Shown: one piece after another, positions 37,259 through 64,000 of the stretch
Layout of the letters: every line of letters starts with the position of its first letter
Numbering within the stretch: position 1 is the first letter of the stretch
Origin: Paragordius varius
Lineage: Eukaryota; Animalia; Nematomorpha
Direction of reading: 5' to 3'
DNA length: 64,000 nt
Assembly: GCA_964247055.1 (NCBI GenBank)
Contig: OZ176057.1
Coordinates: 4,278,001-4,342,000 of the forward strand
The notes under the pieces: generated by a model
The model's input: the letters and a program-made list of their open reading frames with translations, nothing else
Databases searched by the model: none
Told to the model about the DNA's origin: nothing
Position numbers and translations under genes: made by a program

Positions 37259-37285
37259 TATATATACCATTTTTCATGCAAAAAC

Positions 37286-37465
37286 ATCATTTTTTCAACC
37301 AAATGCAACATTTTTTCAACCAAACTCAACATTTTTTCAAGCAAACGCAACATTTTTTCAAGCAAAGACAACAATTTTTCAAGCAAACGCAACATTTTTT
37401 CATCCAAACGCAACATTTTTTCAACCAAAGACAACATTTTTTCAAGCAAAAACAACAATTTTTTA
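37286..37465 (+). repeat. 21-bp minisatellite in left arm of element A (AACATTTTTTCAAGCAAACGC-type, ~8 copies)
   Basis: Direct repeats of AACATTTTTTCAA(G/C)CAAAnnC at 21-bp spacing. Confidence 0.9.
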
Positions 37466-38265
37466 AAAATAAAAAACCATTTTTTTTATTTTAAGACATA
37501 TTAAATTTAAAGTTAGCGTAAATTAATTTTAGCGTAGAATTATGATTTTTATTGTTTTATTTTCAATATTTGATGGTATGATTGATTTTCAAACATTTTA
37601 ATTTAGCCCATAAATTGCATTAATTATTTATAAATATTTTTTTTTATCAATCAATACAATTTGCGCTTTAAGACTCTAAATTTAAAGTTATCATTCGCTT
37701 AAAATTCCTTACATTTTTTGCAGTTTCCATACAACCCTATTTTTTAAATTTAAACTAATATCTCTATTTATTAGTTTTTGAATCAAAATTAATATTTTCA
37801 TAGTAAAACAACCTTGTTTGAAAATTTTCTTTAATTTATCAATATTATAATTAAATTATTGTTTTAAACTAGATATTACCCTCAATAACCCACAAAACGT
37901 AGATATTTTTTAATATTAATTTATAGAGAATAATAAGGATATACGGTTCTTATGAAAGAAATGTATTCACTTAGTTTAGGTTAAATATAAAAATTAGGTT
38001 TAAATGATTGAATAATGAATATTTTATTGTCTCATAAATAAACGTTATAATCAAAATTAAAATTGAAGGATCAACTTGAAGTGAAAGAAAAAAATAATTA
38101 ATATAAATAAATAATGCAATTTATGGGATAAATTAAAATGTTATCAATCATACCATCAAATATCGATGATAAAACAATAAAAATCATAATTCTAGTTTAA
38201 AATTAATTTACATTAACTTTAAATTTAATATGTCTTAAAATAAAAAAAATGGTTTTTTATTTAAA

Positions 38266-38465
38266 AAAAATTGTTGTTTTTGCTTGAAAAAATGTTGTCT
38301 TTGGTTGAAAAAATGTTGTGTTTGGGTGAAAAAATGTTGCGTTTGCTTGAAAAAATGTTGTGTTTGCTCGAAAAAATGTTGTCTTTGCTTGAAAAAATGT
38401 TGCGTTTGCTTGAAAAAATGTTGAGATTGGTTGAAAAAATGTTGCATTTGGTTGAAAAAATGATG
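38266..38465 (-). repeat. 21-bp minisatellite in right arm of element A (~9 copies, inverted)
   Basis: TTGAAAAAATGTTG recurs every 21 bp; it is the reverse complement of the left-arm unit. Confidence 0.9.
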
Positions 38466-38959
38466 TTTTTGCATGAAAAATGGTATAACATTTATTAATT
38501 GTGGATAAATTTATAATCAGATTTAACCTTTTAAAGTATTAAAATTCATTCAATTACTGAATAAAAATTTTGCAATCAGAAAACCAAGTGAAGGTCAAAA
38601 AATAGATTTTTCAAATCACGGTTTACATAGGATAAAAAAGAAAATACTAAATCATGTAGTGGCTTCCAAATAACTTGGATTTAATAAATTATGGCTTCGA
38701 AACTCAGAATATTTTTTAAAATAAATTTTATAAAAAATGAAACTTGTATTATAAAATGTCATTAAATCTAATATCATGTTTGTCAAAAAACTAAAACATT
38801 TAAAATTAAAAACATTGGATTGACTTATTAAAAAAAGGAATATCGATACTAAGAGTTTATAAATTTATTGCGAATTATGTCCAATTTTTTGAGGGCCGCA
38901 TTGTCACCCGTTGTAATTCATATATCCTCTTTTTATACCATTTACTTATATATTTATGT

Positions 38960-39800
38960 CTTAAATAATGCCAGTTCAGATGGTCACTGTTCTGTCAATT
39001 AATACATGCAAGCGAAGCCTTTATTCCATGCCGCATTTTAAATATGAAAACAAAATGCTTATACCTGATGAAGATCTTTCATTATACTACCTGATAATTT
39101 GGGATTTTCCGCCATCTTGCATTCATTATTGAGAAAGTCTTCATAATCCTTCTAATTGTCGTCGAAATTCTTTGTTATAAATTTTAGTCATATTAATATC
39201 CCCCCTTAATTTAGCTTTTCTGTGCTTTTCTGCTTTTTTGACATCCAATTATTATCTTTCCTCTTTACCCTTTACACTTTTTGCCACTTTATTAATATTT
39301 ATCGTTCCTCATAGTAAAACTGCATTCATTGTCTCATCTAACTAATCCATCTTCTCTTTGGAATGTTCCGGGTGTCATATCTATATATCTTTTTTAGAAT
39401 TTTAATGATTTTAAGTTTGATTTTTATTAAAAGCTTATGATCGTTATTCCCGTAACGAGTATAGAGCTTTTCCATTTTTATGAAGATATTATATAATCGA
39501 TTTAATTGCGTTGTATAGCCCTTTTATTGTTTGGTTATCATCATCTCGTTTTCCTGGCACAAATCAATCAATGTTTCCCCCGTCGTATCATTTTCCCAAT
39601 CCATATGGCCCTATTTGATCTACTCTACCTATTTATATTTTTACGTCCGTATAATCTAATGGATTCTGAGAGCTGAGTAATATTTTATTTTAAATAGGAC
39701 TGAAGATTATTATAAATAATTAACACATCTTATTATTGTCTTCTTTTGTTAATTTATTATCATTCTTGCTTTTTTTTGATAAATTATTAATTTTTTCGAT
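38960..39800 (-). pseudogene. Degenerate non-LTR retrotransposon fragment (RTE-clade-like; APE endonuclease C-terminal half plus linker)
   Basis: Hand translation of the minus strand across stops and frameshifts gives IGPYGLGK, GETLIDLCQENEMMIT, RLYT, N*IDYI, KWKSSI and NNDHKLLI. These follow the order of RTE-type APE motifs (GxYGLGxRN, LIxFCxEN, RLYTW, NQIDYI, SDH). A linker-like KEFRRQL...YEDFLNNEC segment follows. Confidence 0.7.
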
Positions 39801-41913
39801 ATTAAGATGAACTTTTGTTATGAATAGAATTCGCTTTTATTTCTCTGTTTTTGAGTATAATTCTTATCAATTTTTAGTCATAATTTAAAAAATCAAAAAT
39901 TTTTAAATCTTAGTCAAAATATAATATTCACTCAAACAAAATGAAAATAAAAAAAGAGTCAATATTCGGAATTTCTCTTCAAAAATAATAATTTTTAATC
40001 AATAATTTTGATAGTATAAAAAGTTAAGGTAGTATAATTCAGTAAAAAAGAGAAACTTAAAATTAGATATATACATATTCCATATAAATCGAAAATGTTC
40101 AAATATATCTATCTTTAAGAATTGTTGAAAAAGCTTGCCTCACTGTTTAAAGAAAGTGTCTTCACCCTTAGTATATGGTATAACTGATTATACAAACAGT
40201 AAAAAAATAAATACATTTCGAATCTCATTTTTTTAATAAATATTACTCTAATTGTTTAAAATGGTAGTGTGAAAAAGAAATATATGTTACTAACACAAAA
40301 AATTCTATATTTTAAAATTGAAATGGCTTATATAGGAAAAATTAAATGTAAAAAAGTATTGTTGTCTTTTTGATAAAATTGTCTTTATAATTTTACGTTT
40401 TGTCTGTATATTTTTTTATGTACTTATTATAATCTCAATGAATGAACCCCTCTTAATATCCTACTCACTGTATACTCAGCAAGACCTACTTAAACAACAA
40501 TTAACAACATAATATTCGTCTTTTAGAGTCAATGTAATTATTTAAAGAGCTAGTATATATTACATTAGTAAAAGTGCCCTCTAATTATTAATCAATAATT
40601 ATTTTTGATATTATTTTTGATGATTTTGGTACATTTTACTGTTGTTACTCTCATAAATTTTGATAAAATTTGTAATTTAATTGATTTATATTTTTTTAAC
40701 CAATTTAATTTCTCGTATACATATAACTGTAATTATTTTAATATATGGCAGGATTTATTAATTGGATGAAGAACTAAAAACAAACGAAATATAATTTGAT
40801 AATATATAATTTAAGCAAATTATAATAATTATTATTCTTTTTTATTTTAGGTTATATTCAAATCCATTTTTTCATTTATTTCAGTTTAATAAATAAAAAA
40901 CCTTATCTCGATTCTCTCCATTTTTTCTGATTAATTTTAGAAACCTGACTCATTTTTTCAAAATGTAAATTATAAACTCTAATTCAATCTATACATACAG
41001 ATAACATATAATAACAAAATTATTTTTGAAGCAAAATTTTTTAATTTAAAATTAAAAGGAATATCAATTTACATTAATAATTAACGTTTGTCATTTAATA
41101 CATATTGTGTTATAAGCCTAAAACTATAACGGCTTTTGAAAATCAAATATTATGTTTTATCATCGTCTGTATAATTCTTTTACTGCAGAGATATAAATGA
41201 TAATTTAACAATACATTAAATTATTATGATTTTAATTAACCAACTTGAAATTAAATGAGCCATTTAATTTATTTAATTTAAGGATATATAAAATATTAGT
41301 AATTTTGTAAAATTTATATTCAAATTCTTACTTAATAAAAAATAATTTTGTATTAATTATTAATCTTTATGATTGTTAACTATTTAATGTTTAAGAAGGA
41401 CTTAATATGTAGGCGGAACATAGATTATTTACCATATTTTATCATTAAATTGTTTTAAACTAATCAATATTTTTGAAATATATCTTAAGGCTGATTCCAA
41501 TTTATTTGCACCATATACAACTATTTCACCTTGAATAATTTGAATCATCCTAAATATGTTAGTCAATATAAAAAATTATTTACATTATTTATATTTTTAA
41601 AAATGAAATATTAATATTTATATAATGCTTAAAAATAATGGCTATAAGTAAATAAATTATATGAATTATGAGTATGTTAGCCCAAAAACACAATTTATTT
41701 TTAGGGTGAATATGAATTGGAAAGAGGCGATATGAATGCTTAAGGGTAAATTTGAAGTGTAAATGGTCAGTCAATCCTTCATTTGCCCAGTCTGAATGTT
41801 TGTTAGTATTATACCATTTTTTAATTGTATAATTTGGCTAACTATAAAGTGAGTTGGCACACATTAAAATGCAATTATGATACCAATTTTATTAGTATAA
41901 AAAAATATTTTTT

Positions 41914-42455
41914 TAACACTTTGAATCAAATTGTGGTATCTAAATGTCCCAGACTGTATTTAAGTTAAAGTTTTTAAAAAACTACTAAAAGAAACGGTCC
42001 CAATTTAAATTTATGCTTCTATCCTAATAAAAATTATATAAATAAGCCGAAATCTAAATAAAATTTAGTTTAAGTTTCATATCAAACTACTTCGACGCCA
42101 TTTTTATTTTACATTAATGCAAAATATCGTGTTTATTTGATTTTAAAGCAAAAATAAAAGCTTATTTATATCACATCTAACATTGATAGAAACAGAAAAA
42201 GTGGTTTATTTTGTATTATTTTTTAATTTAGCTAATGCACACATGTCATGTTTACTAGATTTTTACCTTGAGGTTTTTAAAAATAAGTAATATCAACTAT
42301 TTTTGAAAAGTTTTATCATTTCGGTTCATTAATGTTATAAATCTGCAAATTTTTGCCATGGTTTAAATTCATTCCATATTTTTTAAATTATTTCATTTTA
42401 AACAGGCCTGGGAATTTGAATCAAAGGACTAAAATGAATTTGTTGTATCCTGTTA
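41914..42455. mobile_element. ~540-bp MITE-like element, left member of an inverted pair
   Basis: Starts TAACACTTTGAATCAAATTGTGGTATCTAAATGTCCC and aligns along its length with the reverse complement of 42771-43326, with visible divergence. Confidence 0.7.
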
Positions 42456-42574
42456 ATTACGTTTTATCAAATTAAATTTTACTCTGATCCTAACTTGCAG
42501 CCAAGATGAGAAAATTTTAAATTTTTAGGATATTCGCATTCTTTTTTTTATGTTTGGTCATAATGTTACAGTAG

Positions 42575-42577
<3 letters not shown>

Positions 42578-42626
<49 letters not shown>
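42578..42626. repeat. (TA)n microsatellite, ~24 units
   Basis: Uninterrupted TA run. Confidence 0.97.
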
Positions 42627-42630
<4 letters not shown>

Positions 42631-42770
42631 TATTGTCAACAACAATAACTATGATATTTATTGCATATCAAATATATTTTCAACTCACTGAGTAATAAAA
42701 ATAATAATTTAGAAAAATATTTCATAAAATATGTTATCAAGCTGATGAAAATGCCACAAAGAACTCGCAT

Positions 42771-43326
42771 TAACACTTGGATACAAAGCATTCATTTCAG
42801 TCCTTAGATTCAAATGGTCGTTAGATACCCCAGGCTTATTTAAAATTAAATATTTCGAGAAATGGAATAACAACCATTGCAAATACTTCCACTTATATAA
42901 CATTACTGAACCGAAATATAATAAAAGAATTATTAAAAAATACTTGATATTATTTATTCAGAGGCAAAACCGAGAAATTTAGCCAACAAGCACAAGCTAC
43001 ATTTAAAAATAATGCAAAATATACCACTTTTTCTGTTTCTATCAATGTTAGATGTGATTTAAATAAAAAATTAGCTTTTATTTCACCTTTAAAGTTAAAT
43101 AAAGATGATATATTGCAAAAAGGCTGTAAAATAAAAATGGCGCCGAAGTAGGATATGGATTTATTTTTTCAAAAACTAAATTTAATTTAGCTATTTTGGT
43201 TTATTTAAATTATAAATTTTATTTGGATAGAAGCATAAATTTAAATTGAAACCGTTTATTTCACTAGTTTTTTAAATATATCAACTTCTGGGGCATTTAG
43301 ACACCCCAATTTGAATCTAAGTGTTA
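42771..43326. mobile_element. ~555-bp MITE-like element, right member of an inverted pair
   Basis: Begins TAACACTT...TTAGATTCAAATGG and ends ...CCAATTTGAATCTAAGTGTTA, so it has its own imperfect terminal inverted repeats. It is the reverse complement homologue of 41914-42455. Confidence 0.7.
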
Positions 43327-43714
43327 GATATATATTTTGTTATAAAACGAAAAATAGATAAACTCTGCGCATCCGGGTGTATAAAAAATATCCTGATTAA
43401 ATATACTACAGTATGCATTTACATGCTGGCTTTTGCACACTTATGTTGATCAATTGGACACAGAAATTTACAGAAAATAGCAAGAAAATGTTAAATAAGC
43501 AATTTTTTTGATCTTACATTACATTGCTTATTTAATACTATCGTAAATCTCGTGCTGCTACGCTGCCCGAGGAAGTCCTTCGGATTTCTGGAGGGGGGAG
43601 GGGGGCTATTTGAAAAAAAGGGATCAATAAAATGATCCATATATGTGGATTATTTCGAAACATTATTTAATAGCTATGATCTCATAGGATTTTCTAAATG
43701 TTGCATTCATACTA

Positions 43715-44660
43715 ATAAATTGTTTACTGGTGTAAAGGCCGCAAATTGACGGCTAACGGAAAAAACCGCTATACTAACCTTTTTATGCGTAATATATAAA
43801 GCCTTTTATGAACTCGTATGGCTCCTTAAGTGTTTTGAAAATTATCTCCAAAGCCACGCCATTTTTGTATGGCGTCTCAGTTTTAAACCGGTAGACCCCT
43901 ACCCACAGCCCTATATGGAAAAAGCTCTGAGACCATCCACTCATGGGTTATTCGAAAAAATACCTCAACACTAAATAATCGTTGTATGATGGCGTATTTT
44001 TAGGGCATAAAGGCCACAAATTAACGGCTAATTAAAAAAGGCCTGACCTTTATTTTTACCTAGTTACGGGTAATATTTCGAACTTTGAATGAGCTCATAT
44101 GGCATAATTTTCTATGGCTCCAAAACAACGTAATTTGTATATAGTGGCGCTGTTTTTGGCGGGTAGCTCCCTACCCAGAGGCGGATACTAAAAAAGCGCT
44201 TGATTAAAATTATTGCCTTTATACGGAGAATACCTGGGATCATGATTGATTCAATATGCTTTTATTAGTTTTTGGAAAAATTGCCTCAAAATTAAAAAAT
44301 CATTCTATGGTGGCGCATTTTCCAGTGCGAGGGCCTAATTAACGGCTAATTGTAAAAAACCGCACAATCTAGATTTTGCCTTGTTACGGGTAATATTAAG
44401 CAACTATTGAACTCATATGGCCTGATAGGTTTTTTCAGCCCCAAAAGCACGCTATTTCAATATGACGAGTCACTTTTTCGCGGGTAGTTCCTTGCTCAGC
44501 AGCTATCATCAAAGAAACACTTGAATAAAATTTTTGCCTTTTAACAGGGAATACCAGTAGTCCTTATTGAATTTTTACGGTCTCATATCTTGGGCGAAAA
44601 ATAAAAAAAAATGGCATTTTACGGGGGGAGCGGGTAAAAAGAGGGCCTAAACTAAAAAAG
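43715..44660. repeat. Diverged tandem repeat, ~275-320-bp unit, about 3 copies plus a partial
   Basis: Co-linear anchors: ACGGCTAA at 43749/44024/44342; TTACGGGTAATATT at 44064/44384 (TTATGCGTAATAT ~43783); CTC(A/G)TATGGC and GGTAGnnCC motifs recur at the same spacings. GC is higher than in the flanks. Confidence 0.75.
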
Positions 44661-46380
44661 CGAGACTTCTATGTTCGGCATCGAAAATAAGTAAACAAAA
44701 ATCATATTTGAAGTTGAATGGTCCAACACGTTCTCCGGAAAATTGTCTCAAAGACACGATTTTTTTGGACTAGTGTTTTAAAAAAGAACCGTTTTTTGCA
44801 CCGGATGGGCCCGAACTGGGGACCTAATTCAAGCTATTGTCGGCATTCATTAATGATTATATTTTTTCGACATTTGGATTTGAATCGGTCTACCGGTTTT
44901 CCGGAAACAGATCACAAAGCCAGCTTTCATTTTTATAGATATATAGAAAACAGTTATTTTTTCATACCTTATATTGTTTTTACCAAATATAACATGAATC
45001 CACCATCAAAGTGCGTACTTTATATGTGTTTTATTGGATAATATTAGGATGCTTGAAATATTTGGGCTGAGTCATGTATAATTATTTTCCTAATTTTAAG
45101 ATTGCTCAAAACTGTAAAATAATAGGATTAATTAGGCACATCATGTTAATTAATTTACCACATAAAATATTTTATCATTTTAAAACATTGAATATATGTA
45201 TTTATATATGCTATTTCGACATAATTATTATGCATTTATTCATAATTGAAAAAAATTAACGGTAAAAAAGAACATAAAGTAACAAAATCTATTCCGTATA
45301 TTTAAGAAAATGTGTTATATTAATTAAAGAGGTTTGTATATCGTTATCATTCTACAAATCATCTTAAAAATGCTTTCCAACATTTTAAAGATTAAAATAA
45401 TAAATTTCCATTTTTCGACAATATTTTTTTGTGGTATATAGCATGATTTATCTCGGCATTCTTGCGTTTATTTTAACAAAAATAGCTCATTTTGTGGGAA
45501 GGGGTGGCGACATATTCATAAATAAAATTTTAAAATGGTTATTATTTATGTGTTATACTTTAATGATATATGACATAAGCTATATTTTTTGATATGGTTA
45601 CCAGAATAGTGAATATTATTACGCTTGTAAAACTCTAACTAATGATTTTTTTATTTTATATTAGGACAGTAAGCACGCTTAATAAAAAAAATCATAAATG
45701 CATCATTGATTTATTTAACCCTTAAGTTCTCCCAAGCACCATTTAAACAAAGGTTATAGTTTACACTAGATAACATAAAAAAATAATTAAACTCTAGTTT
45801 TGAAAATAGGTCATAAAAATATAACGGTGTTACTTACGTAAAAATACTAAATTATATTATTAAATGCAAATATTATGCGATTATGTTTCGTGATTCTTTG
45901 GTAAAATAATAGTTGATTTAATTAACCAATCCCTGCAAATGTTAATTAGAATTTGGGTTTGGGTGAAAAATTTGATTTTGAAATACTAAAAACGAATCCG
46001 TCAAAATTTTGAGAAAAAACTATCGAATCATAACATTTTCCGGGGACACTTAATCTTAGTTTTACATACTATTTATTATTATATACAGTAAAATATAAAT
46101 TATACATAAAACTAAATATTAAGACAAATATGTTTTTAATTTTTTTAATATATTGTTTTAAACTGTTATATAAAATAGAAATGTATATTGATAGCACACA
46201 ATGAAATATGTATTTTCGATTGTATTGATTTAGATTAATTAGGGTTCAAATCACAATGATTGTCATTTGTAAAGCAAATTTTGTTTTTATATTATTACGT
46301 TTTGTCCGTATAAATTCAATTTTTACTATATTTATTTATGTATTATGAAAATACTTACTGGCTAAGAAAACTATAAAAAT

Positions 46381-46381
<1 letters not shown>

Positions 46382-46456
<75 letters not shown>

Positions 46457-46458
46457 GT

Positions 46459-46505
<47 letters not shown>

Positions 46506-46547
46506 TAATAATAATAATAATATAATAATAATAATAATAATAATAAT
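46382..46547. repeat. (TAA)n microsatellite, ~55 units with a few interruptions
   Basis: Long AAT/TAA run. Confidence 0.97.
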
Positions 46548-46679
46548 GTTAAAATATATTTTACAGAAGAGGATATCTAAAATTAATTTAAAATATAATA
46601 AGTTACTATTGGCACATTCAAGTATATAATATGTTAAAAGGTGTAACCTTCGAGGCCAACTAAATACGTAATTAATATG

Positions 46680-46685
<6 letters not shown>

Positions 46686-46726
<41 letters not shown>
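46686..46726. repeat. (TA)n microsatellite
   Basis: Pure TA run. Confidence 0.95.
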
Positions 46727-46733
<7 letters not shown>

Positions 46734-49700: not shown

Positions 49701-49955
49701 AAACTATAACTATTTATGTATTTTAGTTTTTTTACTTATATTTGGGGAAAGCTTGATTTTAATTATAACTCTCCTTTTCGGTTTAGTAAAAATGAATTTT
49801 ATAGGGTCTGGTAACCCAATTTTGATTCCTTGATTATAATTCAATAATGATACTCTTATAGTATGCAATAAAATTGATTATGATTTTTTATAAAAATGAT
49901 TTAATTCGAGCTTAAAATTTACTCGAAAATTGAGGGAAAAAATATTCTGTTAATA

Positions 49956-50617
49956 TATACCATTTGCACTTCAAGAGTGTCCTTGAACACTTCAAGTTGG
50001 TCCTTGAACATTTCAAGTTGGTCCATGAACAATTCAAGCTGGTCCTTGAACAGTTTAAGTTGGTCTTTGAACAGTTCAAGTTGGTCCTTGAAAACTTCAG
50101 GTTGGTCCCATGACTTTTTTGTTTTGTTTTTAACTTTTATCAATCAAATCGTAAATAATTCATTTATTTTATTGTTTTTAACCCATTTTCTATTATTTAA
50201 CATAAATTTTAGTTCGATATCAACTTTTAATGTTTGAGAAACCGTATATCTTTATTAATTTCTTATAATAATTTTGGATAATTATAAGATTTTTTGAAAA
50301 AATATATAAGTTTTCTGGGTTATTAATTAAAATTTTTCAAAAACATTTAAAAGTCAATAATTTTGTACAATTAAAAAAATAGTTTGAAACAAAAAAGTGG
50401 TTTTCCAATAAAAAATTTTATTTTTAAAAGAATACATATATAATAAATAAAGAAAATTAGGTTAATAAATAATAAAATAAAAAAAATAAAAATTTATAAA
50501 TTTTAAGGACCAACTTGAAGTGTTTAAGGACCAACTTGAATTGTTCAAAGACCAACTTGAACTGTTCAAGGACCAACTTGAAGTGTTCAAGGACACTCTT
50601 GAAGTGCAAATGGTTTA
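49956..50617. mobile_element. Foldback-like element B: inverted arms with 21-bp GTCCTTGAACAnTTCAAGTTG repeats
   Basis: Left: TATACCATTTGCACTTCAAGAGTGTCC plus ~6 units (49956 to ~50108). Right: ~4 inverted units plus GGACACTCTTGAAGTGCAAATGGTTTA (~50504-50617). The AT-rich spacer is ~400 bp. Confidence 0.85.
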
Positions 50618-50689
50618 TATACATATGTATGTTGGAAAAACCTATCAAAATTTTCTTGGTATTTTTGGTTATAGGGCTATAATATCAGA

Positions 50690-52500
50690 AAGTCACACTT
50701 TTATAATTGCTTTTTATTATAACAAGTTAGGGCATATTATGCTTGATATAATTTTTTTGGTAAAAACAGAATGCTTTGTTTCCTCTACTGTTATTTTTTC
50801 TGCTGCCCAATACTTTAGCTTTTTATCACATATTTTTTAACCAATGATACTTCATTAAAAAGATCATTTTCAGAAATACTATTATTTGAGAATTTTAGAA
50901 AAATAAAATCAAAAGACTTTTGAACGTCGCACCAAGTTAATTCTGGATTTAATGTAATCCAATAACAATCATCAGTATCGTTGTACCGCCCAGTTTTCTA
51001 ATAAAACCTTTTTACAAGGTTCATGATATCCTGACGGGTTATTACACCTTGCACTTTGCGTTTATACTATTGCAAATAGGTAGAAATTATTTCTAACCTC
51101 TCTTGACATTGGTATTTTAAATTATTAACTTCATTTGCTACTTCAATCGCAGATAATTTGTTACCTTCAATAAGTTTAATGATATTGAAACAAAGCAGCT
51201 TGTTTTTTAGCCATATTTTTGAAGATTTTTTCCAAAAACATTTCTAATATTGCAGGACATTTGTCTTGCAATAGAAAGTAGGATTTTAAGGGATCATACA
51301 TTTTCGAAATTCTTTTACCTGGCAGAAGAGCTAACCTATGCGTTTTACAGTATCCAAGTATTTTGATATTTAACTTCCGCATTTTTACAATATCTTTTAA
51401 GCATTTTAACGCGTACAATGTATGTATAGAAATAATATATATTGTAACAACAATGTTTTCCACAACTATTGGTAACAAGTCAGCCGCTCTTTTAATAGCG
51501 TTGTGTTTTATATGCCCTGTACAGCCAACACCAATAATATTTTGATTCAGATCTTTCGCTAATTTATATAAAAAAATTATTTGTGCCTCTTGCCGCTTCT
51601 CCGAAATAAGCATTCGTATTGACAGCATCGTATGGGATAATTTTTTGTTTTAAATTATTTTTTTCCAAAATATCAATAATAGAACTAAAAATTATTTTAC
51701 TGAAAGAAATAAAATCTAAAATTTTTATTTAAACCTCAATATCTGTATCAAAATATCCTATGAAGGCTGAAAATAATTTTATTATTTTATGAGATGCGTC
51801 AGAATTTATAAATATAAAATTACTTTTTTGTAAATTTATTTTTATTTTCGAAAATGCTTATGGAGAAAGCACATTACATACTGTTGCCTCCGCCTTTGTT
51901 CTAGAAAAGTTTTTAATAGCCTTCTGATTACTTGTGATGTACAATCAATAGATCTGAAGGAATAATTGTGATTAACAGCGTGAAATGATTTAAGTCCTTC
52001 TGATAATGTAAATTATTTTCTTCATCTCCATAAGTTGTTTTTTATAAAAAATCTGGCATTTTAGAATATGATGCAGCAGTATTAAACATCTTTTATGTTT
52101 CTGTTTCTCCAAATCCTTTGATATATCATTCTTTCCGCCGAGCGAAATCCTGAATTCGCCGTTACATGTTTGACATTTAACTATGTAATCTTAGATTTTT
52201 TTAATAAAAGGAGATTCCCTTCGAAAATCATCGGTAAGTTTACATCCCTTTTTCCTAGTCATTTTGTTAAAAATGTTAAATAAATTATAACAATCTACAA
52301 TAATTTTCAATGATGAGCGTAAATAGCAGACATGATTGACTATTCAGTTAGCAGTACGAACACAAAAGCACCAAACAATGAGTTGAATAAAAAGTTAATC
52401 TGGATTCTAAAAATCGGGACTTATAAAAAATAGCGGGACGCGGGACAAATGGTATATAATCGCGACTGTCCCGTCAAAAGCGGGACGTCTGGTCACCCTA
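50690..52500 (-). mobile_element. Decayed hAT DNA transposon (Blackjack-like end), second end not found
   Basis: The minus strand starts TAGGGTGACCAGACGTCCCG at 52500, with clustered CGGGAC/GTCCCG subterminal motifs at 52415-52490, followed by a transposase relic. TAGGGTGACCA-type termini are recalled as typical of hAT-Blackjack elements. The left boundary is approximate. Confidence 0.75.
50700..52262 (-). pseudogene. hAT transposase pseudogene (multiple stops and frameshifts)
   Basis: ATG at 52262 gives MTRKKGCKLTDDFRRESPFIKKI*DYIVKCQTCNGEFRISLGGKNDI (N-terminal CxxC zinc-finger-like). ORF 51176-51628 carries GVGCTGHIKHNA (CxxH motif), KILGYCKTHRLAL (degenerate TRW motif) and KMYDPLKSYF. 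A further fragment near 50800-50880 reads ENDLFNEVSLVKKYV. Confidence 0.8.
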
Positions 52501-52706
52501 TGTATACCCAATATTCCCCAATCCCATTTTACCATTTTTATTAGATTTTGAATATTGTTTAAAGTACAAAAAACTTTTTTATAATCTTAATTATTTAATA
52601 ATAAATAAGTTTTTAAAAAAGAAAACTTAAATGTCAATATAGTTTTACCGGTTTAATGTTTATGGATTTTGGTTTTTGAGTCATTGTATTAAAATATGTT
52701 TCAAAA

Positions 52707-53291
52707 CAGGGGTGTTCCACACAAAGAGGCAAACGGGATGGAGTTTTTACTCAAAAAATCTGGCGGGCCGCATTTAAATACATGAGGATTTATAAATATT
52801 TTTTTAGATTTAATTATAAGAAAAAAATTACGAGGACAATGTAGTATTTGTTATCTAACCGATTTTTGCTTGTTCGCTGCCAAATTTGAAAAAAAACTAA
52901 ACGAAAATATGCGAAATTATAAATTTTGTAATAATTATGTAAATTATGGAGTTTCAGTTTGTTAATTTTTCAAAACTTTCGGGGGCCACACATACTATCT
53001 CAGTGAGCCATTCCGACCTAATAAAATAGGCAGCGCTCCAAAATACTTCTGCTCCTGATAAATTTTAAACATAAAATTTAAGAAATGAAGGTGAAATTAA
53101 TTTTCTTAAAACAATTTTTTAACCTTATTTTGGCACTAAAGAAAAATTTTAGAGCAAATAATTTTTTACAGCGTATGCTGAAATTCAATAAAATTTTAGA
53201 TTAGTTAATGGCCATATTTTTGCGAATGCGGCCCGGCAGATTTTTTGATCCAAAGATGCGGCCTGCAAAGCCATTGTGTCGAAGACCCCTG
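52707..53291. mobile_element. hAT (Charlie/Buster-like) MITE, 585 bp
   Basis: Imperfect TIRs CAGGGGTGTTCCACACAA / TTGTGTCGAAGACCCCTG. Subterminal inverted pair AAAAAATCTGGCGGGCCGCATT / AATGCGGCCCGGCAGATTTTTT. The 8-bp flanks TTTCAAAA vs GATTAAAA match at only 5/8, so the TSD is degraded or absent. Confidence 0.7.
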
Positions 53292-54339
53292 GATTAAAAT
53301 ATCGTTAATGAACAATATTTTATAAAAAATCTTTTTAATTTAAAGATATAACAACAAAAAATATAATAAAACCAAAGATGAAAACCATAAATTAAAATCT
53401 TAAGCATTATATTTTTTATCTTAAACATTTACTATCATTGTATGAAAAAAAGGCAGAGTAAAAAATATACCTGCAACCACTAAATACGATTTATATTATA
53501 AAACATAGGAATAAATTAAATGTATCAGGCTTAAACCTCTTAAAAATGGTAAGTGCCCATTAGTTAAATATATATTTTTTAGCAAAAGCTAAATCAATAA
53601 ATGTTTCCAATAATAATATAGATATAATGCAAAACAATATAATTTGAAATTATTTTGATAAATTGTCTCAAATTTTTACCGTTTATAATAAAAAAAATTC
53701 TCAAATTTAACGCAATTCCCATTTATACTGCTGACCACTTTTATATATGGGGTATATTTTCACATCAAAAATGAATATTTCCTAAAATTAGTTATATAAA
53801 CAAATTTAAAACCGGGATGAGTTATGGTAGGTAATATGAAAACACTTAGTTGTTGAAAACCCAATTTTATGATGTCAAACAATACCTCATCATTTTGTCA
53901 ACAATAAAATTTAAATTGTTGACAAACATTTAAAAAATTTACGGAAAAAATTTAAAATCGAAGATCCATGGTGATAGAAATATATAGCATATCTAATGTA
54001 TTTTCATATATTTTAAAATGCTTTATGCTGTTTTTATAATGTTTAGAACTTGCTTAAAATTCTGCAAAAATTATATAGTAAAAAAATTTTTAATAATTTA
54101 GTATTTATTATTTAATAGGCGGCAAATTTGCGTTATTGTCCATTTTAGACGCGTCCAGGAATCTGAGTTTTCAGAGGTCATATTTTAAATTTATTCATTG
54201 AATTTTTATATTTTTTCCTATAGTTGTTGATATATAATAATTTTTTGTAAAACATTTAGCTTTAAAAAAAAAATAAAAATTATAAACTCATTTTTTTTTC
54301 AATTTTCGGATAAAACCGTTATAAAATTTGCAGAATACC

Positions 54340-54586
54340 CAGAAGCGTAGCATGCATTTCTGGCGCCCCCCTCCCTCTGAATGCTATCTCTTGCATTTTA
54401 CAAAAAAATAATTAAAAATTAAACCCTGGTCATGACCACTCAGAAATGGGGGAATTTATATGTATTTTAAATAATAACCTTTGTACCTATTTTTTTGAAA
54501 TAAAATTATTTTTTTAAATCCGGCGCCCTCTCAATTATGGCGCCCGTGCATCAGCCCCGCTTTCCTCCCCCCTAGCCACGCCTTTG
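54340..54586. mobile_element. Small GC-enriched MITE-like element (CAGRRGCGTAGC-type ends), probably hAT-derived
   Basis: Ends CAGAAGCGTAGC / GCCACGCCTTTG are imperfect inverted repeats. Three internal GGCGCCC motifs. No clear TSD. Confidence 0.45.
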
Positions 54587-57500
54587 CAAACTACTAACCT
54601 ATATATTATATTACTTATGTACTCTATTTTCATAAATGCTTTTACAACAATAACGAGAACTATTATTCATCATATATATTTTTTATGGCGTGTTGAGAGT
54701 GATAACAGTGGCTCTTGTTCGAAACAATAATTTATGTTAGCAATTTAATCCAAATATAAAAATGAATAATTATACACATGATAACCAATATATAACACTT
54801 TATTACCTTTTGTGTTACTTTTAAAGTCCATAAACCATATAAATTCGATTGTCTTAATAAGTGTTTTAGTATTGCAACAAATTTAAAAATATAATTTTAT
54901 TAGCATTAAACAAATCTTGCAAAAAGGTTCTCAAACTTTTTGCTGCTATTTCCCTATTTAAATAATACAACAAGCAAATAAATGCATATTAATATACAAA
55001 ATACACTCTTTATATTTACTTATTATAATCAGCTTACTTATTTTCTGCAGCTAAATTAAGAATTTTAGGAGTCAAGAAACTGTAAAAACTATCCTATTTC
55101 AAGAATGGATTGATAATTATATTTTAACTAAAATAATTTTTTAATAAGCTATGATAAAGTTTTAACCCAAAAGAAATCATCTACAAACGTAAGATTAATA
55201 AAGTCTTAAGTCCCATTTTAGCCATTTAATATTCATACATGATTAATTTCAGCTCTCATTAATAAATTGTCCCCTATAAAGAGTTTTTTATAGGGCATTA
55301 TGTAAATCATATAATGTTTTAAATTTCTATAATACCTTCTCCACCAACAGCCCCTATCATATAAAGGTTAATTCAAACACTGATTTTATTTGTTAACATA
55401 AAAAAAGATTTAGGTAAAATTTTTTACCTTCTTCAGTTGCCACTGTAATGAATATTAAATAATTATGATGTAAATTTATTAACTGTATTCACGAATTAAC
55501 GATTATCATTAAACCCAGTTTATGTTTGAAGGCAGCTAGCTAGCGCATAGCTATAACCTTTACTAAATTAAAAATTTAAAAAATTGTTATCAAATTTAGA
55601 TATACAAATTTGCGCTATTCATAAAACATTTAGTAAGTCATTAGAAAAGAGGAAGATTAAACAATATAATTTTGAATACAAAAATAAGTTTGAAAAAGGC
55701 GAAAAAATATCAAGTTGTGGTGTAAAAAACTTTAAATTATAGTCGATTTCTGTTAACGATTTTTGGTTTTATGTTATGATTCGTTTTAATATATATCCTA
55801 TAAATGTTTGGGCTTCAAACCGAGATCTATAATGAAATAAAACCAGGATATAGAGCAAATGGAACCAGCTTGGTTTTTAAGTACAGTTTCGCAACCGGTT
55901 TTGTACAAGGAACCGGTTTCCTTTCTGACTATTATGATTATATTTTATTCATAATTATTTCATAAACCACTTATTTTGGAGTGTATATGAAAATTGAGCT
56001 GGGGGATCCAACTATTTATAATTTAAACCAGGGTCTTTCCTTGAATTTTGAAACTAAAATCGATTGTTTTTAAGAAAGTAGAAACTTGATTTATAATAAC
56101 CTGAAGGTTCCTAAATTTAGTAGCGGATTCTTATTCCGTATGTTCCGTTTACGATTCAAATCCCTGATTAAAATTTCAAGGTTAAATTACTTTAAAATGC
56201 AAAATTTTTGTCTATGGGCCTTTCAAAATTTGATTAAGATTAACTTAACTTAACCTTCATTTTGAAATTTCACATAATCTTTTAATAGAGAATTAATGCT
56301 TAGTTGGGTTGGATTTTAATATGAAATAAAATATTATTAAATATCTTTTTTATATCAATTAATGTTAGTATAATAATTTCAAAAATACGGCAATTTTTAA
56401 TTTTATTAACACCCCTAGAAAAACATTTAACCTGAAAAAAATCTGGTATATTAAATATTAAAAAATTCTTTTCCACGCATGTCGACCAAATTTTAACTAA
56501 CGCGATTCTCGAGATAATTTAAAATTTGTAATGGTACAAATAAAAGACATAACAAATATAAATATTATTTTAAAAGACAGTTCTATATAATTAAAAAATA
56601 ACATATATATTATTAAATTATATTAAATATAATTAAAATTAAATTATTACTAGTTTCTTGGTAAAAATGTAAAAGCGATATATTTAATGCATACCTGCGG
56701 CAGCTAAATAACAATTTTTTGAATTATTACTAAACATGTAAAAATATTCTAACATTAGTATTCATCAATAATTTCCCCTATTTTTATTTATATTAAAACA
56801 TATATTATTCAAAAATATGGATCCTCTTATACAAATAAGAAAAAACCCGCTAATATTTATTTCAAAGCAAGCCAACAAAAACCTCAAATATAAAACAAAA
56901 TCATAGATTAAAATTTAAAGACAGAACGTATGGTGTTAGGGTAGCCATGAGAATTTGTTCATCCAACAACTTTTATATCTGTATTAATTTTAGCCTAAAA
57001 AAGTTCATTCTATGTTATACACCTAATATTTACCCCTAGACATGATAATGTTTTGATATTTTTAAATCTAGCCAAAATATGTGCATAATGCAACCTGTGT
57101 ACCGCTGTTAAAATACCCCATATATATGATTTATTTTTTTCTTTAAAGGGAAGTTGTAGGGTTTTGTTTTTTTACATTCTTAAATTAGAATAAAAAATCT
57201 ACGTCCGAGTGTTATTAATATAGTTAACAAAGTATTCATTTCGATTCGATTGGATGTTACTATATGATCATTTTTTTAAAATATCTTATTCAACAAATTA
57301 TCATAATATGACAGCTTTTTTGTTTCGTGAGCTAAGATGTAATTATACAATACATCCTAAATAAAAATTAATAAATTTTATTTTTTATAAACAAAACCAT
57401 ATGGGACTTCTTTTGGAAGTAGAACCGAAGCTAAAATATTTTCTGAACGGTTAAAACGATGACCCTGATTCTAAAACATAAATTTGAAACCGAGGTGGTT

Positions 57501-58948
57501 CTTAAAATTTAAAACCGAAATTCGGTTGCAGACCTAACTGAACAGGTTCTATTAAAATATCAGAAACAAATTATTTACTCAATTAATCTTGCCTATAAGT
57601 TTAATGAAAAATTTTTCACGCATAGTTTCATACGAGAACTATATGGCCTTTAACTGTATCATAATATTTGTATTTTCATATATACTTATTCATTTTTACT
57701 ATAAAAAATTTAAGTATTTAAAAAAGATGGCTAGCTCTAATTACATTATCAATACGTGTTTAATTATCAAAAAATATGATGTATAGCAAAAACCTTCTTA
57801 TTACCAATAAATTTTATTAAGGTATAAAATTACATCATCCAAATAAAAAATAAATACAATAAATATTCATTATAATATTTTTATATATTTTTTACCTGTA
57901 TCGGCTACAAATTAATTAATTAAAATTACAAATAAATTTTGGATCGAAAGAGCGAAACATGAATGTATCCATTAGTAAAAAGTTTAAATTTTTAAATTTT
58001 TGATTTTATATTTCTATAATTTATAATATTAAACAAACACTAATAATATAATGATAAATTTTGTAAGTAATTTATCAATAATCCAAGTTGTATGAAAAAT
58101 TTTAAAAATCTTCATAATATTAGTTAATTTTTCCATATAAAATTGGCATTTTTACACCTTTCTTTGAAATTCTGTTTTTTTATATTATTCACTAAGAGTA
58201 ATTAATTTAAGTGTAGGAGAACTAAAGATGTGCAATGACAAATTTTAGGTGATTTAATTTAAAATGATAAAGCCTTAGTTCGTAAAATTTTCTATTTTTC
58301 TAATTAATTTAAGAAGCTTTCAGAGAAGAACCGGAAAAACACATTTTAGTGATATTGTAAGATATTAGTAAACGCACAAGGTAAATATATTTAAATCCAA
58401 AAATACACCATATAAAGTTGTTTTTAATTGTGTTTAAAAATTGAATGTACGGACAAAAGGCAACATAAATGAACATTTTTTTATAACCATTTTTAATCGT
58501 GATTCAATATAAATCATTGTGTAAGAAAATATGACTTAGAGATGTATATGGCAACGCAATAAATTATTTTACAGATGTAATTAAATAATTTAATGGGAAA
58601 TTTAGGTTAAAAAAGTTTGGATGGTTTTTAGAAACAATTATTATATTTATTTATATTTTGTCGAAATAATTTAAATTTTGTAATTAGTTAAATGATTTCC
58701 CATCTATTTAAATGCAAGCTCTTTATTTCATTTTTGATTTTTTTAAATTCAAAATAAATTACCGTCAAAGAAAAGATCTGGGTCAGATTCGGCATCAAAA
58801 AAAACAGATTCTAATCAAATGATTTATAAATATAAAAATATAAGTGGTGCTTATAATGATTTATGTCTAATCCATGTTGAATAAACCAAACAAAAATGTT
58901 TATGAATAAAATATAAGGTTTTGATATTTAAAGTTTATCTGTTAAAAA

Positions 58949-58956
<8 letters not shown>

Positions 58957-59003
<47 letters not shown>
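58957..59003. repeat. (TA)n microsatellite
   Basis: Pure TA run. Confidence 0.95.
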
Positions 59004-59004
<1 letters not shown>

Positions 59005-59269
59005 TTTGTTAAATAACCGTGATTAAATTAACAACTAATGATAAGTATTTTAGGACAGCGCATGCAATAAATATGTTAGTTATTCATGATTCATAATCAA
59101 ACTCTATTTACATTTTTTTATAAAAAATTGTTTAAAAATATAGTTAAATAGCAGGTGTTGCTATATGTTCGGTTTTAGTAAAAAAAATAGTTTTATAAAA
59201 TTATAAATTGATAGGCTTCCCCCTAAAAATACTCTTTAATTATATATATGCCAAAAATAATCGTTATTT

Positions 59270-61000
59270 GCGACAAACCATTAGCCATTATACTTCCGAT
59301 TTCATTTAAGTACTTCTCTGCAAAGGCATTGGTGCGAAGAAAAATAGATTAAACCAGTGGTACTCACCAAAAAAATTTGACGGGCCAAATAAAACATATT
59401 CTTTTTTTGAATGCCATAAACCTTATAATGGCAAATATTCCAGAGCTATTTGACACATATGCACATATTTATACTCTGAGTCAGCACAATAATTTTTTTT
59501 CGGAGCGCATAAATCCAGCTAAAAACTCTTTTGACCATTTCGTTTAAAAAATTAAAATATTTTGATAACATCATTTAATTTTGATATTACATAATTTTTG
59601 ACATTTGATTTCGTCTCATGACAGGCCACGTCGTCCATATGATCATCGGTTAAGCGATTTTTGTTATTCTTGACATTTATTTTTGAATATGCCGTCTCAC
59701 ATGTTTAAATTGAGGGAAAAACAGTTAGGATAACTGGAGCACTTTTTTAATATTTTCATATTTATTTGGCACATCATGCCAAAATACATTTTCTTCTCTA
59801 CGATTCTCATTGAATATAGCCCCCGAATTGGAATCTATAATCATTGAATTCTTCAATGATTATAACCTGATCGAAACCAAAATGTTCAAGTTGCCTAAGA
59901 TTAGATAAATCCATACGCCATGGATTTTCAACGAGTTCTAAGCAATTTTAAATATTTTTTAATTCCTTAAATCTGAGTTTCATCTCATTGGATAAAAATG
60001 TTAGATGATTGTTTATTATTAAATTAATCTGCGCGGGAAATTCCATATTTTCTCATTAATCGTTTTGATGGGTGAAAGGCTTGCTTAAACACAAAAAAGG
60101 AATGCAACAAACATTTCAAAATAGAAAACAAATCAGAATACATTAGCAAAAACAACATGTGCCAAAATTTTAAAATCATTTTAATGTAGGGAAAATTTTC
60201 TACATTTGGGTAATAAAAATTAAGGAAAATAATTTAATATTAAATATACCAAAATTCGTTTATGAGTATTTTATTACAATAAAATTATAATTTAAGTATT
60301 AATATGGTCATAGGGCAATTTTAAATCACTTTTAGGGCCGCATGCGGCCCGCGGGCCGCGGTTTGAGTACCACTGGATTAAACGGTTGCATGTCAAGAGA
60401 GTGCAGCGAATGCTTAAAAACTTCCATTGAAACATTAGGGGTTTCACTGATTTTGCTGTTGTAGAACGGATGTAATACAGCAGAATTATTCCTTAGTTAT
60501 AGCTCATTTCCCCCAGTTTACATCAATGCTTGATTTAATATAATCCTCAGTTGGCGATCGATTGGTGTTTCAGTTCCGGGCTTGAATAATTTATACAGCG
60601 CTTGTTTCTACTAAACATTAAGCATTAACCACCTGCCAAATCGATCCTAGTTTGATGAACCATAGCAGCTTGTGATTACCAATATAACGCTCATATCATC
60701 CAACACAATAAAATAGAATAATGAATTGCTTTCGTAACGTTGAACCAGAAATCTGCACAAGCCCCTTTGCAATTTTTGGTTTAACTTTAAATTGTGTGGA
60801 TATTTCTTATTTTAAACTCTCGTAGACGTTATTTAAATATAGTAAACGCCTATTGCTGATGAAATAAGTTTATCCTTCATTTGTTATTGAGTCTTGGCTT
60901 TGATCGTGTTTACATTATTTCATCCAAAGCGCCCACGGACTTTTTTAAAATAACAATTATTTTTCAACGATTAATCATACGTAGTAATTGACGCATGCTT
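59270..61000 (-). pseudogene. Possible pogo/Tigger-like DDE transposase relic, interrupted by the hAT MITE at 59355-60375
   Basis: Removing the MITE and one TSD copy and reading the minus strand gives HSLHSLDMQPFNLFFFAPM, resembling the pogo-family PHxxHxLQPLDxxFFxPxK motif. Upstream lies KPKIAKGLVQISGST, resembling pogo-family PKVIAxKGxKQVG. The match is heavily degenerate and the boundaries are approximate. Confidence 0.4.
59355..60375. mobile_element. hAT (Charlie/Buster-like) non-autonomous element, 1021 bp, with perfect 8-bp TSD
   Basis: Perfect 12-bp TIR CAGTGGTACTCA / TGAGTACCACTG. TSD GATTAAAC at 59347-59354 and 60376-60383. Subterminal GGCCGCATGCGGCCCGCGGGCCGC is typical of this group. 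Confidence 0.92.
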
Positions 61001-63442
61001 ACAATTCTCTATCAGCAAATGATTTTTTTATAATAGAATAAGGTAAGTGCGATTAATATGTGCTTGTATTTTAATATCTAATAAATAAACTGATTTGTGT
61101 CAAATGTATGATCAGCGTAATTTCTTGAAACACCTGGTAATATTAAACATTTTTAAATGTATGATTCCTGTATAAACTGTTAGTTTTGATAACATTACCA
61201 TCGTTATAATAGGTAATCTATATCCATCGCATTTGTTGTTTCCAAAAATTCTTATGTTTACCAAAAAGCTTTACAAATATATTGGAAAAAATGGTAATTA
61301 AAACTTGTAAAATATTTTATATAAGGATTGTGATGTTTGGTTTTGGAATAAGTCAGGAATCCGGCTTTGTTGCACCATATAAAAAAGCTGCAAGATATGC
61401 ACACATTTGCCCAACAAATAAATTTTTTTTAAGAAGCTATTAATTTTTCCAAAAATATTAACAATATCTTAACCTAAAAATATTATATTTAATTTAATTA
61501 AAAGTGAGCTTAAAGGTTTCAATATTTTGATTCATATTTTGATAGGCAAGTATATGCTTAAACGCTAAGCCAGATTGTTATATAAAAATTTATGTATATG
61601 GTATGGAAATGTATGACGTCAATGGATATTTTGTATTTAAACTTAATTTATTAAAAAAACTTAAAGGAAAATTTTTGTGACAAATTATAATATAAATAAA
61701 TATAATCCATCTAACATATTCTCCTGTTGGCTCAAAGATTTCGCTATTAATTTAAAAAAGAGGTTATAAATAATTTTTAAATCCTGCTTCAACCTTTCCG
61801 TGTAAAATAACATAATAAATTACAAAATTTAATATAGCAAATATAAATAAAATATGATGCTTTCTTTAAAAAAGTTAGTTTAGTATATATAAAATTATTA
61901 TCAAGCATAGTTTTAATTAAGGCATTTTTCCATGATGCTTAGGGTTTTGAGCTTTGGAGTTTCGGTAATTAATAATTAGTAATTTGTTTGAGAATATATA
62001 AAGTTTATAAAATTATGTAATATTTTATGGAATAAGGCATTTGTTTTTTCTCGAAAATTTTTACAGCAAAATTTCAATTTAATCATTGTCTGATATAGAC
62101 CGGATCTAATGGTAACCTCTTTTGCAAACCTACAATTTGCACATAATCCTATGTAAAATACATAATATATATGAATGGTGTTTTAGGTGGAATGTGTGAT
62201 ACTACAAGAAAATAAATTTAAATTATGGTTAAAAAAGACAATTGTATTCATTTTAAAATTATTTTTAAGTTTGATTAAGTCAAACCCTTATTCTGGCCTT
62301 TGAATTCAATTGTATGATATATGATTAATACATTTCCTATAATCCCGTTTAATCAAATATATATTAAATTTTCGCAAGTAACTTTAAAATCTAAAATTAT
62401 TTCAAATGTAATCGATAAAATAGTAAATAAACCTTTGCTATATAAAATAAATTATTAGTTTTATTAGATTATTTTATTTTAAATTATCTCTAGATCAATG
62501 TGCTTCAGTATATTTTGGTCTTAAAATAAAACTAATATTTAAAAGCTTAATTATCATAAAAAAGTATAAATTTTAACCAAAAATAGGTAAAAAAATGGAT
62601 ATATATATATATACAAAACCCCAAGTAGTCAAATAGTTGTGTGGTACTGTTGAGTGTTAACAAGCAAGAAAAATGTGGATGACGACACGAAAAGTTACAC
62701 ATATCATTTATAATTTTAGTATATAACTATAATTTTCAATCAATATTTTAATTAATTTTCGGTTATCATTAAATTACGGATATAACTACTATACATTATC
62801 AATTCGTCATTTACCTTTATAAAGTTAACTTTGTTTTAATTAAAAATTTATTTTAAACACGAGTTAAATTACTAAAAAAAGATTTGGATTTCAGGTGAAG
62901 ACACAGCTATAACAAGTAATGCCGTTTATAGTTATCCTTTAACTATTTGTTAATGATTGAAAACTAAAAAAATATTACCACTTTCGCTTATTTCGCTTTC
63001 AGACACTTCTAAATTTTTAAATTATTTTATATGATGAAAAAAATTGATAAATATTCAAAAAAATATTAATGCATATTTTACCACTGATTATTTCTTCGTC
63101 CTCTACAATATTAATTATTTACATATATTACATTGAACATAAAATTACGCGCACAAAATGTAAAAACTAAAGCTTATATATAATATTTTTTAGACTATTT
63201 ATTTAGACTTAACTTAAAGTCTTAAAATTAGGAGTGTCCAACAAGTGCCCCAAACTCTCTTTGCGAACTAAATTTAGGAAATATATAATTTGCTAAAATA
63301 TGCCCAAAAATCTTAATAAAATTGATATTCTCAAACAATATTTTAAATAAGTGTATACTTGGCGTTGAGATGGAGAAAATTGTTATATTGTGTACTTAAA
63401 GTCTTATGTTTAAATTTTATTAATAATTTATAAATGTCTATA

Positions 63443-63683
63443 TATACCATTTACAGTTCTAATTTACCCTTATACAATTCAAACTCACCCTCGAACAATA
63501 CATTCACTTATAACAATATAAATTCACTCATGAAAAATTCAAATTCACCTTAAATATCTTATGCGTTTCCGAACTAATGTAACTATTTATTTTTATTAAA
63601 AATATATAAAAATATAGGTAATTTTAATTTTTAATGTATTTTATTTAAAGGTGAATTTGAATTGTTTGAGGGTGAATTTGAAT
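63443..63683. mobile_element. Foldback-like element D (third 21-bp module type), right arm cut off by element C
   Basis: Starts TATACCATTTACAG. The left arm has ~21-bp AATTCAAACTCACCCTCGAAC-type units to ~63553. The inverted arm TATTTAAAGGTGAATTTGAATTGTTTGAGGGTGAATTTGAAT runs ~63642-63683 and stops abruptly. Confidence 0.65.
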
Positions 63684-64000
63684 TATACCATTTACACTTC
63701 AAGAGTGTCCTTGAACAATTCAAGTTGGTCCTTGAACAATTCAAGTTGGTCCTTGAACAGTTCAAGTTGGTCCTTGAACAATTCAAGTTGGTCCTTGAAC
63801 AGTTCAAGTTGGTCCTTGAACAATTCAAGTTGGTCCTTAAACAATTAAGTTGGTCCTTTAACTTTTTTGTTTTGTTTTTAACTTTTATCAATCAAATCGA
63901 TAATAATTCGTCTATTTTATTGTTTTTAACCTATTTTTTATTATTTAACATAAATTTTAAATCGATATCAACTATTAATCTTTGAAAAACCGTATATTTT
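63684..64000 (+). mobile_element. Element C: second copy of the element-B family (left arm and inner segment), running off the window
   Basis: TATACCATTTACACTTCAAGAGTGTCC plus ~7 very uniform GTCCTTGAACA(A/G)TTCAAGTTG units, then a unique segment homologous to 50110-50270 (TTTTTTGTTTTGTTTTTAACTTTTATCAATCAAATCG...AAACCGTATAT). Confidence 0.85.

Follow-up and report, generated by a model that had tools for sequence, protein, structure and literature searches.

We examined a window of 64,000 bp (G000:C8:4278001-4342000) from an AT-rich eukaryotic assembly of 110.5 Mb, in which four repetitive elements, A, B, C and D, begin with the same 10-mer, TATACCATTT, and continue into tandem arrays of 21-bp units. 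According to our overall best explanation, which we hold to be probable, A, B/C and D are MITEs (miniature transposable elements with inverted repeats) belonging to three of four sister lineages of Tc1/IS630 (DD34E) transposons. The 10-mer is found eight times in the window, at 37263(+), 38478(-), 38934(+), 41810(+), 49956(+), 52447(-), 63443(+) and 63684(+), against an expected count of 0.75, and none of 100 shuffles reached eight. Genome-wide, where the reversed 10-mer served as the control, there are 9,805 occurrences compared with 2,090. For array detection in the window we used Tandem Repeats Finder (TRF), which returned period-21 arrays at 37270-37464, 38266-38480, 49967-50108, 50505-50606, 63445-63548 and 63707-63862; two further, weaker rows overlap the arms of A. 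Indels are absent from the arrays of A, B and C and amount to about 3% in two short D arrays. All of the listed arrays adjoin TATACCATTT, and the window holds no other period-21 arrays outside a satellite at 1-34.9 kb, so that array and motif are tightly linked, as the first-pass annotation of this DNA had it. That annotation also had all four elements start with the 10-mer, A and B close with its inverse (B with one mismatch), and exact 21-bp arrays lie a few bases inside each terminus, and our reading of the sequence and the TRF results bear it out on each of these points. Coordinates are collected in Table 1.

Table 1. Elements, target-site duplications and isolated copies of the 10-mer in the window
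Feature	Position	Strand	Remark
TA target-site duplication, left of A	37263..37264		
Element A, 1,221-bp non-autonomous Tc1-like element (large MITE)	37265..38485	+	
TA target-site duplication, right of A	38486..38487		
Bare 10-mer	38934..38943	+	Background; array and partner both absent
Bare 10-mer	41810..41819	+	Background; an unrelated inverted-repeat element lies about 100 bp away
TA target-site duplication, left of B	49956..49957		
Element B, 658-bp MITE	49958..50615	+	
TA target-site duplication, right of B	50616..50617		
Bare 10-mer	52447..52456	-	Background; short CGGGAC repeats on either side
TA target-site duplication, left of D	63443..63444		
Left part of element D, a decayed MITE about 264 bp long	63445..63685	+	Unit TTGAACAATTCAAATTCACCC
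Element C, second B-family MITE, nested in D	63686..64000	+	

The arms of A are about 317 bp long with 91% complementarity, and each starts with TACC and 9-10 units of 21 bp (inner unit TTTTTTCAAGCAAACGCAACA). Those of B, about 119 bp with 92% complementarity, hold seven units after TACC on the left and five on the right (inner unit TTGAACAATTCAAGTTGGTCC); the right terminus reads GGTT instead of GGTA, its terminal base having mutated, which is the one mismatch mentioned above. The right arm of D is split by C at the TA at 63684-63685. C runs past the window end to position 2462 of L025 (window-equivalent 64396; L-numbers are the labels of the loci we examined), where it closes with GGTA, then TA, then the remainder of D, whose last 23 bp and closing TA occupy L025 2465-2489. 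A, B and D are all multi-copy in the genome: copies of the B and A MITEs are 75-90% alike, and the copies of B itself elsewhere are 85-88% identical. The only open reading frames (ORFs) of at least 90 aa in the four elements, 50520-50840 and 63662-63985, are read-throughs of arrays. These elements are thus non-coding, high in copy number, flanked by a TA duplication and equipped with the arms of a transposase-bearing partner, as MITEs are, and we are nearly certain of their identity as Tc1-like MITEs with cognate partners.

To define the ends we assembled 83 distinct array-bearing termini from the window and the examined loci. TA precedes TACCATTT in 82 of the 83, and the positions further out are variable, with a preference for A at -3 (63/83). 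Moreover, the 21-bp register of D is exact across the C insertion if a TA was duplicated; otherwise D would be 2 bp short. On these two grounds we identify TA as the duplication and TACCATTT as the true terminus. In neither respect do the copies of A, B and D across the genome differ, and the first-pass view of non-autonomous elements sharing one terminus and a 21-bp spacing holds, the elements being cut-and-paste transposons. Each end has the form TACC + n x 21 bp; the units follow one another head to tail, and their register relative to the cleavage site is fixed. Every family has its own variant of the outermost unit, which starts with ATTT and is conserved within the family. Arms carry 3-22 units in A, 3-12 in B, 3-9 in D and 10-12 in a fourth type, E, described below; the inner units within one family are highly conserved save for 1-3 positions, and array indels are rare. 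We also considered whether further unit types exist. The 29 TA+TACCATTT sites at which no array was recognised comprise A, B and D copies that are decayed or carry indels, an internal E site and isolated hits.

The first-pass annotation had left the mobilising enzyme unknown. We scanned the genome for the Pfam domain DDE_3, obtained 135 matches and examined 30 loci as DNA. At several of these the 10-mer and its inverse lie a few kilobases apart with an open frame between them, and the long copies sought in the first-pass annotation do exist, with a Tc1/IS630 DD34E transposase inside. The E-type element in L061 (2,475 bp, TA duplications included) has arms of about 240 bp with eleven 21-bp units of the fourth type (inner unit TTTTCCCAGTCAATCGAAACG) and one gene, a 316-aa ORF, between them. 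In L038-L044 a 341-codon frame lies between D-type arms, the D unit flanking a 3.2-kb element with twin genes. One of these elements, from L041 892 to L042 2517 (G000:C9:1405919-1409167), is a 3,249-bp near-perfect palindrome whose arms of at least 1,583 bp differ by one mismatch and whose two identical transposase genes face outward from the centre. The twin-gene form was present in all four D-type gene loci seen. The E-type element has a single gene within terminal inverted repeats, and the D-type is a variant with two inverted genes. D-type elements at three TA-flanked sites are 98.6-99.5% identical, which indicates that the D lineage moved recently. A separate 341-codon frame lies between A-type arms in L050, and the arms of element A match those of this element at 74-77% over 370-430 bp, the interiors being unrelated. 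In L046 a B-type arm comes after a B-type frame that has decayed; the array of B is about 91% identical to this arm, and the match ends before the interior sequence of the MITE. Arms are all that the MITEs have in common with their long partners. Elsewhere in the genome, L047/L048, L051/L052 and L056/L057 hold inverted gene pairs of an unrelated Tc1 family, about 3.1 kb apart; its protein, 313 aa from the first Met within a 339-codon frame, has 24-28% identity to the lineages described here.

The partners bear directly on the comparison with Drosophila Foldback and Galileo elements drawn in the first-pass annotation. Long, internally repetitive inverted arms are common to both, and the tandem repeats in the long arms of Galileo hold additional transposase binding sites (PMC3688188). 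Taken literally, this would make the window elements members of a P, MULE or other non-Tc1 group, lying near Tc1 genes by coincidence. We consider this scarcely credible: the duplication is TA, not 7-9 bp, Tc1-type DDE_3 genes sit between matching arms at many independent genome loci and on metagenome contigs, and no other transposase type was present inside any copy found. The comparison survives as an analogy only.

The transposases of the lineages match DDE_3 with E values of 1e-22 to 1e-17. D161, D245 and E280 are invariant in 34 sequences, and since 34 residues separate the last two, the enzymes are of the DD34E type. In an AlphaFold (AF2) model with a confidence (pLDDT) of 85, two three-helix bundles at residues 14-56 and 71-115, both modelled with high confidence, precede an RNase-H-like core. 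The best Foldseek matches of the model were full-length Mos1 (E 2.9e-13) and the catalytic domain of Sleeping Beauty (E 5.5e-9). A sequence search against solved structures gave nothing significant; the fold comparison alone links the protein to these two. The N-terminal region, with matches to HTH_32 and HTH_Tnp_1 below the Pfam cut-off and with precomputed PF00292/PF13518 hits in outside relatives, has the features of a bipartite, paired-like helix-turn-helix (HTH) and is the predicted DNA-binding domain. All the features we tested place these enzymes in the Tc1/mariner superfamily. The D-type and A-type frames lack an in-frame ATG, which would be restored by a putative upstream ATG exon joined through a GTAT...TAG intron of 22 or 24 nt (L041 2376-2440 minus; L050 2376-2410 minus). 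Such tiny 5' introns would point to a host with very short introns.

Comparison of the proteins, with single open frames as queries and exons unjoined, separated four lineages. Identity is 61-62% between D and B, 46-49% between A and E and 43-47% for the other cross pairs; other Tc1 families in the genome have 23-29% identity to this clade and lack the terminus. When placed in a tree together with 34 relatives from outside, the four lineages fall into a single clade (100/98), within which D groups with B (100/99) and A with E (92/77). When metagenome elements were added, the clade was kept at 98, and its sister consisted of outside elements that also have a TACC terminus. The transposase-bearing copies of each lineage have arms with only their own unit type. 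We then aligned the units in register, which gave 17/21 identities for B-D, 14/21 for A-E and 7-10/21 for the other pairs, against 5.7+-2.0 for shuffled units; in five of the six unit pairs no cyclic shift gives a better alignment than the register that the terminus sets. The pairing of the units, B with D and A with E, is the pairing of the transposase tree, an agreement that speaks for common descent and co-divergence and not for swapping. The second HTH region is more diverged (33-51% identity) than the catalytic core (48-71%). Two broken copies, G000:C4:3436947-3437675 and G000:C5:11824647-11825462, have 68% and 59% identity to the D-type protein and may be further sub-lineages between B and D.

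We next counted the termini of these lineages across the genome. Using for each family a 27-mer probe made of the terminus and the outermost unit, with up to three mismatches, we counted 231 termini of A, 1,497 of B, 5,627 of D and 346 of E, 7,701 in total, with zero in the controls. The excess of the 10-mer over its reversed control is about 7,715, a figure not strictly comparable with 7,701 because the 27-mers allow mismatches. Since the two match, no large fifth family is left. For annotation this means that about 7,700 repeat termini, or about 3,800 elements, in this genome are explained.

The first-pass annotation had instead proposed one non-autonomous family with interchangeable cassettes, mobilised by a single enzyme; on this model the enzyme would read only the terminus, spacing and core. 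TA+TACCATTT and the register are indeed common to all four families, and a small core is conserved in phase. B MITEs are also abundant in the census, and only decayed B genes were found; the D enzyme, which is related to that of B, is both intact and young, so that it may plausibly cross-mobilise B elements. What speaks against a single enzyme is that the transposases fall into four lineages with 43-62% identity, each flanked by arms of no unit type but its own, that unit similarity tracks the enzyme tree, that mixed arms were not seen in the approximately 83 termini examined, and that the second HTH region diverges faster than the catalytic core. We therefore regard this explanation as very unlikely and replace the single enzyme and its interchangeable cassettes with four lineages, each with its own unit.

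The same design extends to relatives outside this genome. In the large protein collection searched, the closest proteins have 37-42% identity, and their sources are Strongyloides papillosus, three microsporidia, Hermetia illucens and unnamed metagenome entries; identity to named relatives is at most 42%. A metagenome scan gave 80 loci, with relatives at 25-43% protein identity. The period is 21 in 41 of 80 arrays near these relatives, and among the 45 that retain most of the gene, 29 have 20-22-bp arrays, which flank the gene on both sides in 18 and on one side in 11; many of the contigs stop within an array. Exact TATACCATTT is present in 11 of the 45, mostly at the outer array edge; TATAGCATTT is present in six, and so is the canonical Tc1-like TACAGGG, in some of the latter together with 21-bp arrays. 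Across 12 unit types there is a phase-locked core of T at positions 1-4, TT at 9-10, A at 13 (in all), T at 15 and C at 20, and the rest is free. The lineage comparison and these relatives together indicate that the terminus, the period and a small core are conserved while the unit sequence turns over, much as the first-pass annotation had supposed. In one metagenome sample, Ga0307474 (L067-L095), there are over 30 related Tc1-like elements, and their 21-bp units are of many kinds; lineages seem to have split in a similar way there, in another organism or community.

Could the arrays be passive, that is, a slippage-prone ancestral repeat undergoing concerted drift, with only the terminal ~25 bp (terminus and outermost unit) needed for transposition? 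The copy number of 3-22 per arm would suit this, as would the fact that the most numerous family is that of the short D MITEs, with 2-3 units. Drift of this kind does not readily account for an exact 21-bp period phased to the cleavage site across relatives of 25-43% identity with unrelated units, for inner units so uniform within a family, or for the rarity of indels inside arrays. In characterised Tc1-like elements, moreover, direct repeats are binding sites (PMC4120734). On balance we think passive arrays unlikely.

A possible model, which as a whole we rate as less likely than not, is that the arrays act as phased docking platforms and that changes at a few unit positions, matched by changes in the DNA-binding domain, have repeatedly split the clade into mutually private, coexisting pairs. 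Each 21-bp unit would be a docking site for the bipartite domain, with its two HTH motifs, of the cognate transposase. Because 21 bp is about two helical turns, the bound molecules would sit on one face of the DNA, and the array would recruit and align many transposase molecules beside the cleavage site. The conserved catalytic part would recognise the common TACCATTT, and lineage specificity would come from the variable unit positions, which would have co-diverged with the DNA-binding domain. In this manner one transposon may have split into several largely private enzyme/end pairs, whose MITEs would persist through their retained arrays. The parts of this model are not equally firm. By analogy with characterised elements, the 21-bp units are fairly likely to be transposase docking sites; that mobilisation is private to each lineage is possible, at somewhat less than an even chance.

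A number of observations weigh against the docking model and the separation of lineages. The docking role rests on the conservation of period, phase and core in the sequences, and many units may be dispensable; the unit number per arm varies from 3 to 22, which means that slippage acts on the arrays. The agreement between units and enzymes concerns four lineages, for which a chance match of two pairs is 1 in 3, and the support for (A,E) is moderate. The B-type link depends on one decayed locus, L046, no intact B-type gene was present among the loci examined, and the B MITEs may no longer move at all or may depend on the D enzyme, the units of B and D being 17/21 alike. The lack of mixed-arm elements applies to the approximately 83 termini examined, and a genome-wide search for chimeric arms was not made. 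Finally, an ATG is available to the A- and D-type frames only through a predicted first exon and an intron of 22-24 nt.

The window has other features as well. The three bare 10-mers noted in the first-pass annotation are indeed without 21-bp arrays. We rejected them as relic ends: they have neither arrays nor partners, and their number is that of the background, the control count implying about 1.2 per 64 kb. The satellite occupies 1-34930, about 35 kb, and continues upstream of the window. Its 82-bp unit (246-bp higher order) is composed of four sub-repeats of about 20.5 bp and has a GC skew of +0.64. We considered the satellite as an expanded array of the clade, but its similarity to the A, B, D and E units is within the shuffle range, and there is no TACCATTT at its 3' edge. 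An inverted-repeat element of about 1.4 kb at 41917-43325 has an (AT)28 tract in its middle and arms at 41962-42038/43211-43287 and 42145-42238/42990-43083. Two ORFs, 51176-51628(-), of 150 aa, between B and the bare 10-mer at 52447, and 44718-45041(+), matched no Pfam family.

Among eukaryotic cut-and-paste transposons, those of the Tc1/mariner type are understood best, and tools such as Sleeping Beauty are based on them; what the repeated sites within their arms are for is still debated. The clade described here is an extreme case, with up to 22 contiguous candidate sites at an exact two-turn spacing that is phase-locked to the cut site, and its design is conserved over deep divergence while the site sequence changes. 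It also provides a natural experiment, with four sister enzyme/site pairs in one genome and many more in environmental DNA, which could show how a transposase switches its DNA specificity while remaining functional, whether cross-mobilisation between sister lineages is avoided and how satellite DNA arises from array ends. If the pairs are private, they would form a natural set of orthogonal Tc1 transposase/end systems with one common catalytic terminus and would represent transposon "speciation" through specificity switching.

Among known systems, the Foldback and Galileo elements of Drosophila resemble these in having long inverted arms of tandem repeats. They belong to another superfamily with another enzyme (P/THAP in Galileo) and 7-9-bp duplications, and their repeat units are much longer and less regular. 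Tetris, an element related to them, seeds satellites (PMC4079207). The "unusual MITEs" of corals (PMC2872659) proved to be unrelated, being of piggyBac type with TTAA duplications.

We found no description of such array ends for the Tc1/mariner superfamily in the literature searched. The nearest counterparts are the inverted repeat-direct repeat (IR-DR) elements Sleeping Beauty, Bari1/Bari3, Minos, S, Paris and Tc3. In Tc1-mariner arms the direct repeats are transposase binding sites, two or three per arm and separated by spacers (PMC4120734), and the IR/DR layout governs the ordered assembly of the transposition complex (PMC5224488). Like the elements described here, the IR-DR group has a TA duplication, a DD34E enzyme with a bipartite HTH, arms of about 100-320 bp with repeated candidate transposase sites of which the outer is unlike the inner, and non-autonomous copies that keep the arms alone. 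The typical IR-DR layout is an arm of about 200-250 bp with two or three separated repeats; the arm length fits our elements, but in place of separated repeats they have 3-22 abutting 21-bp units, starting 4 bp inside the end, and their terminus is TACCATTT rather than the usual CAGT-type. By analogy, they may work as IR-DR elements do, although the layout differs.

The MITEs themselves are most like Stowaway-like MITEs: both are small elements that code for nothing and occur in many copies, and both have a TA duplication, arms shared with a partner and an unrelated interior. Three features set them apart. The arms here are tandem arrays rather than simple short inverted repeats; the 1.2 kb of element A is a large size among MITEs; and several sister MITE families with distinct arm units coexist in this one genome.

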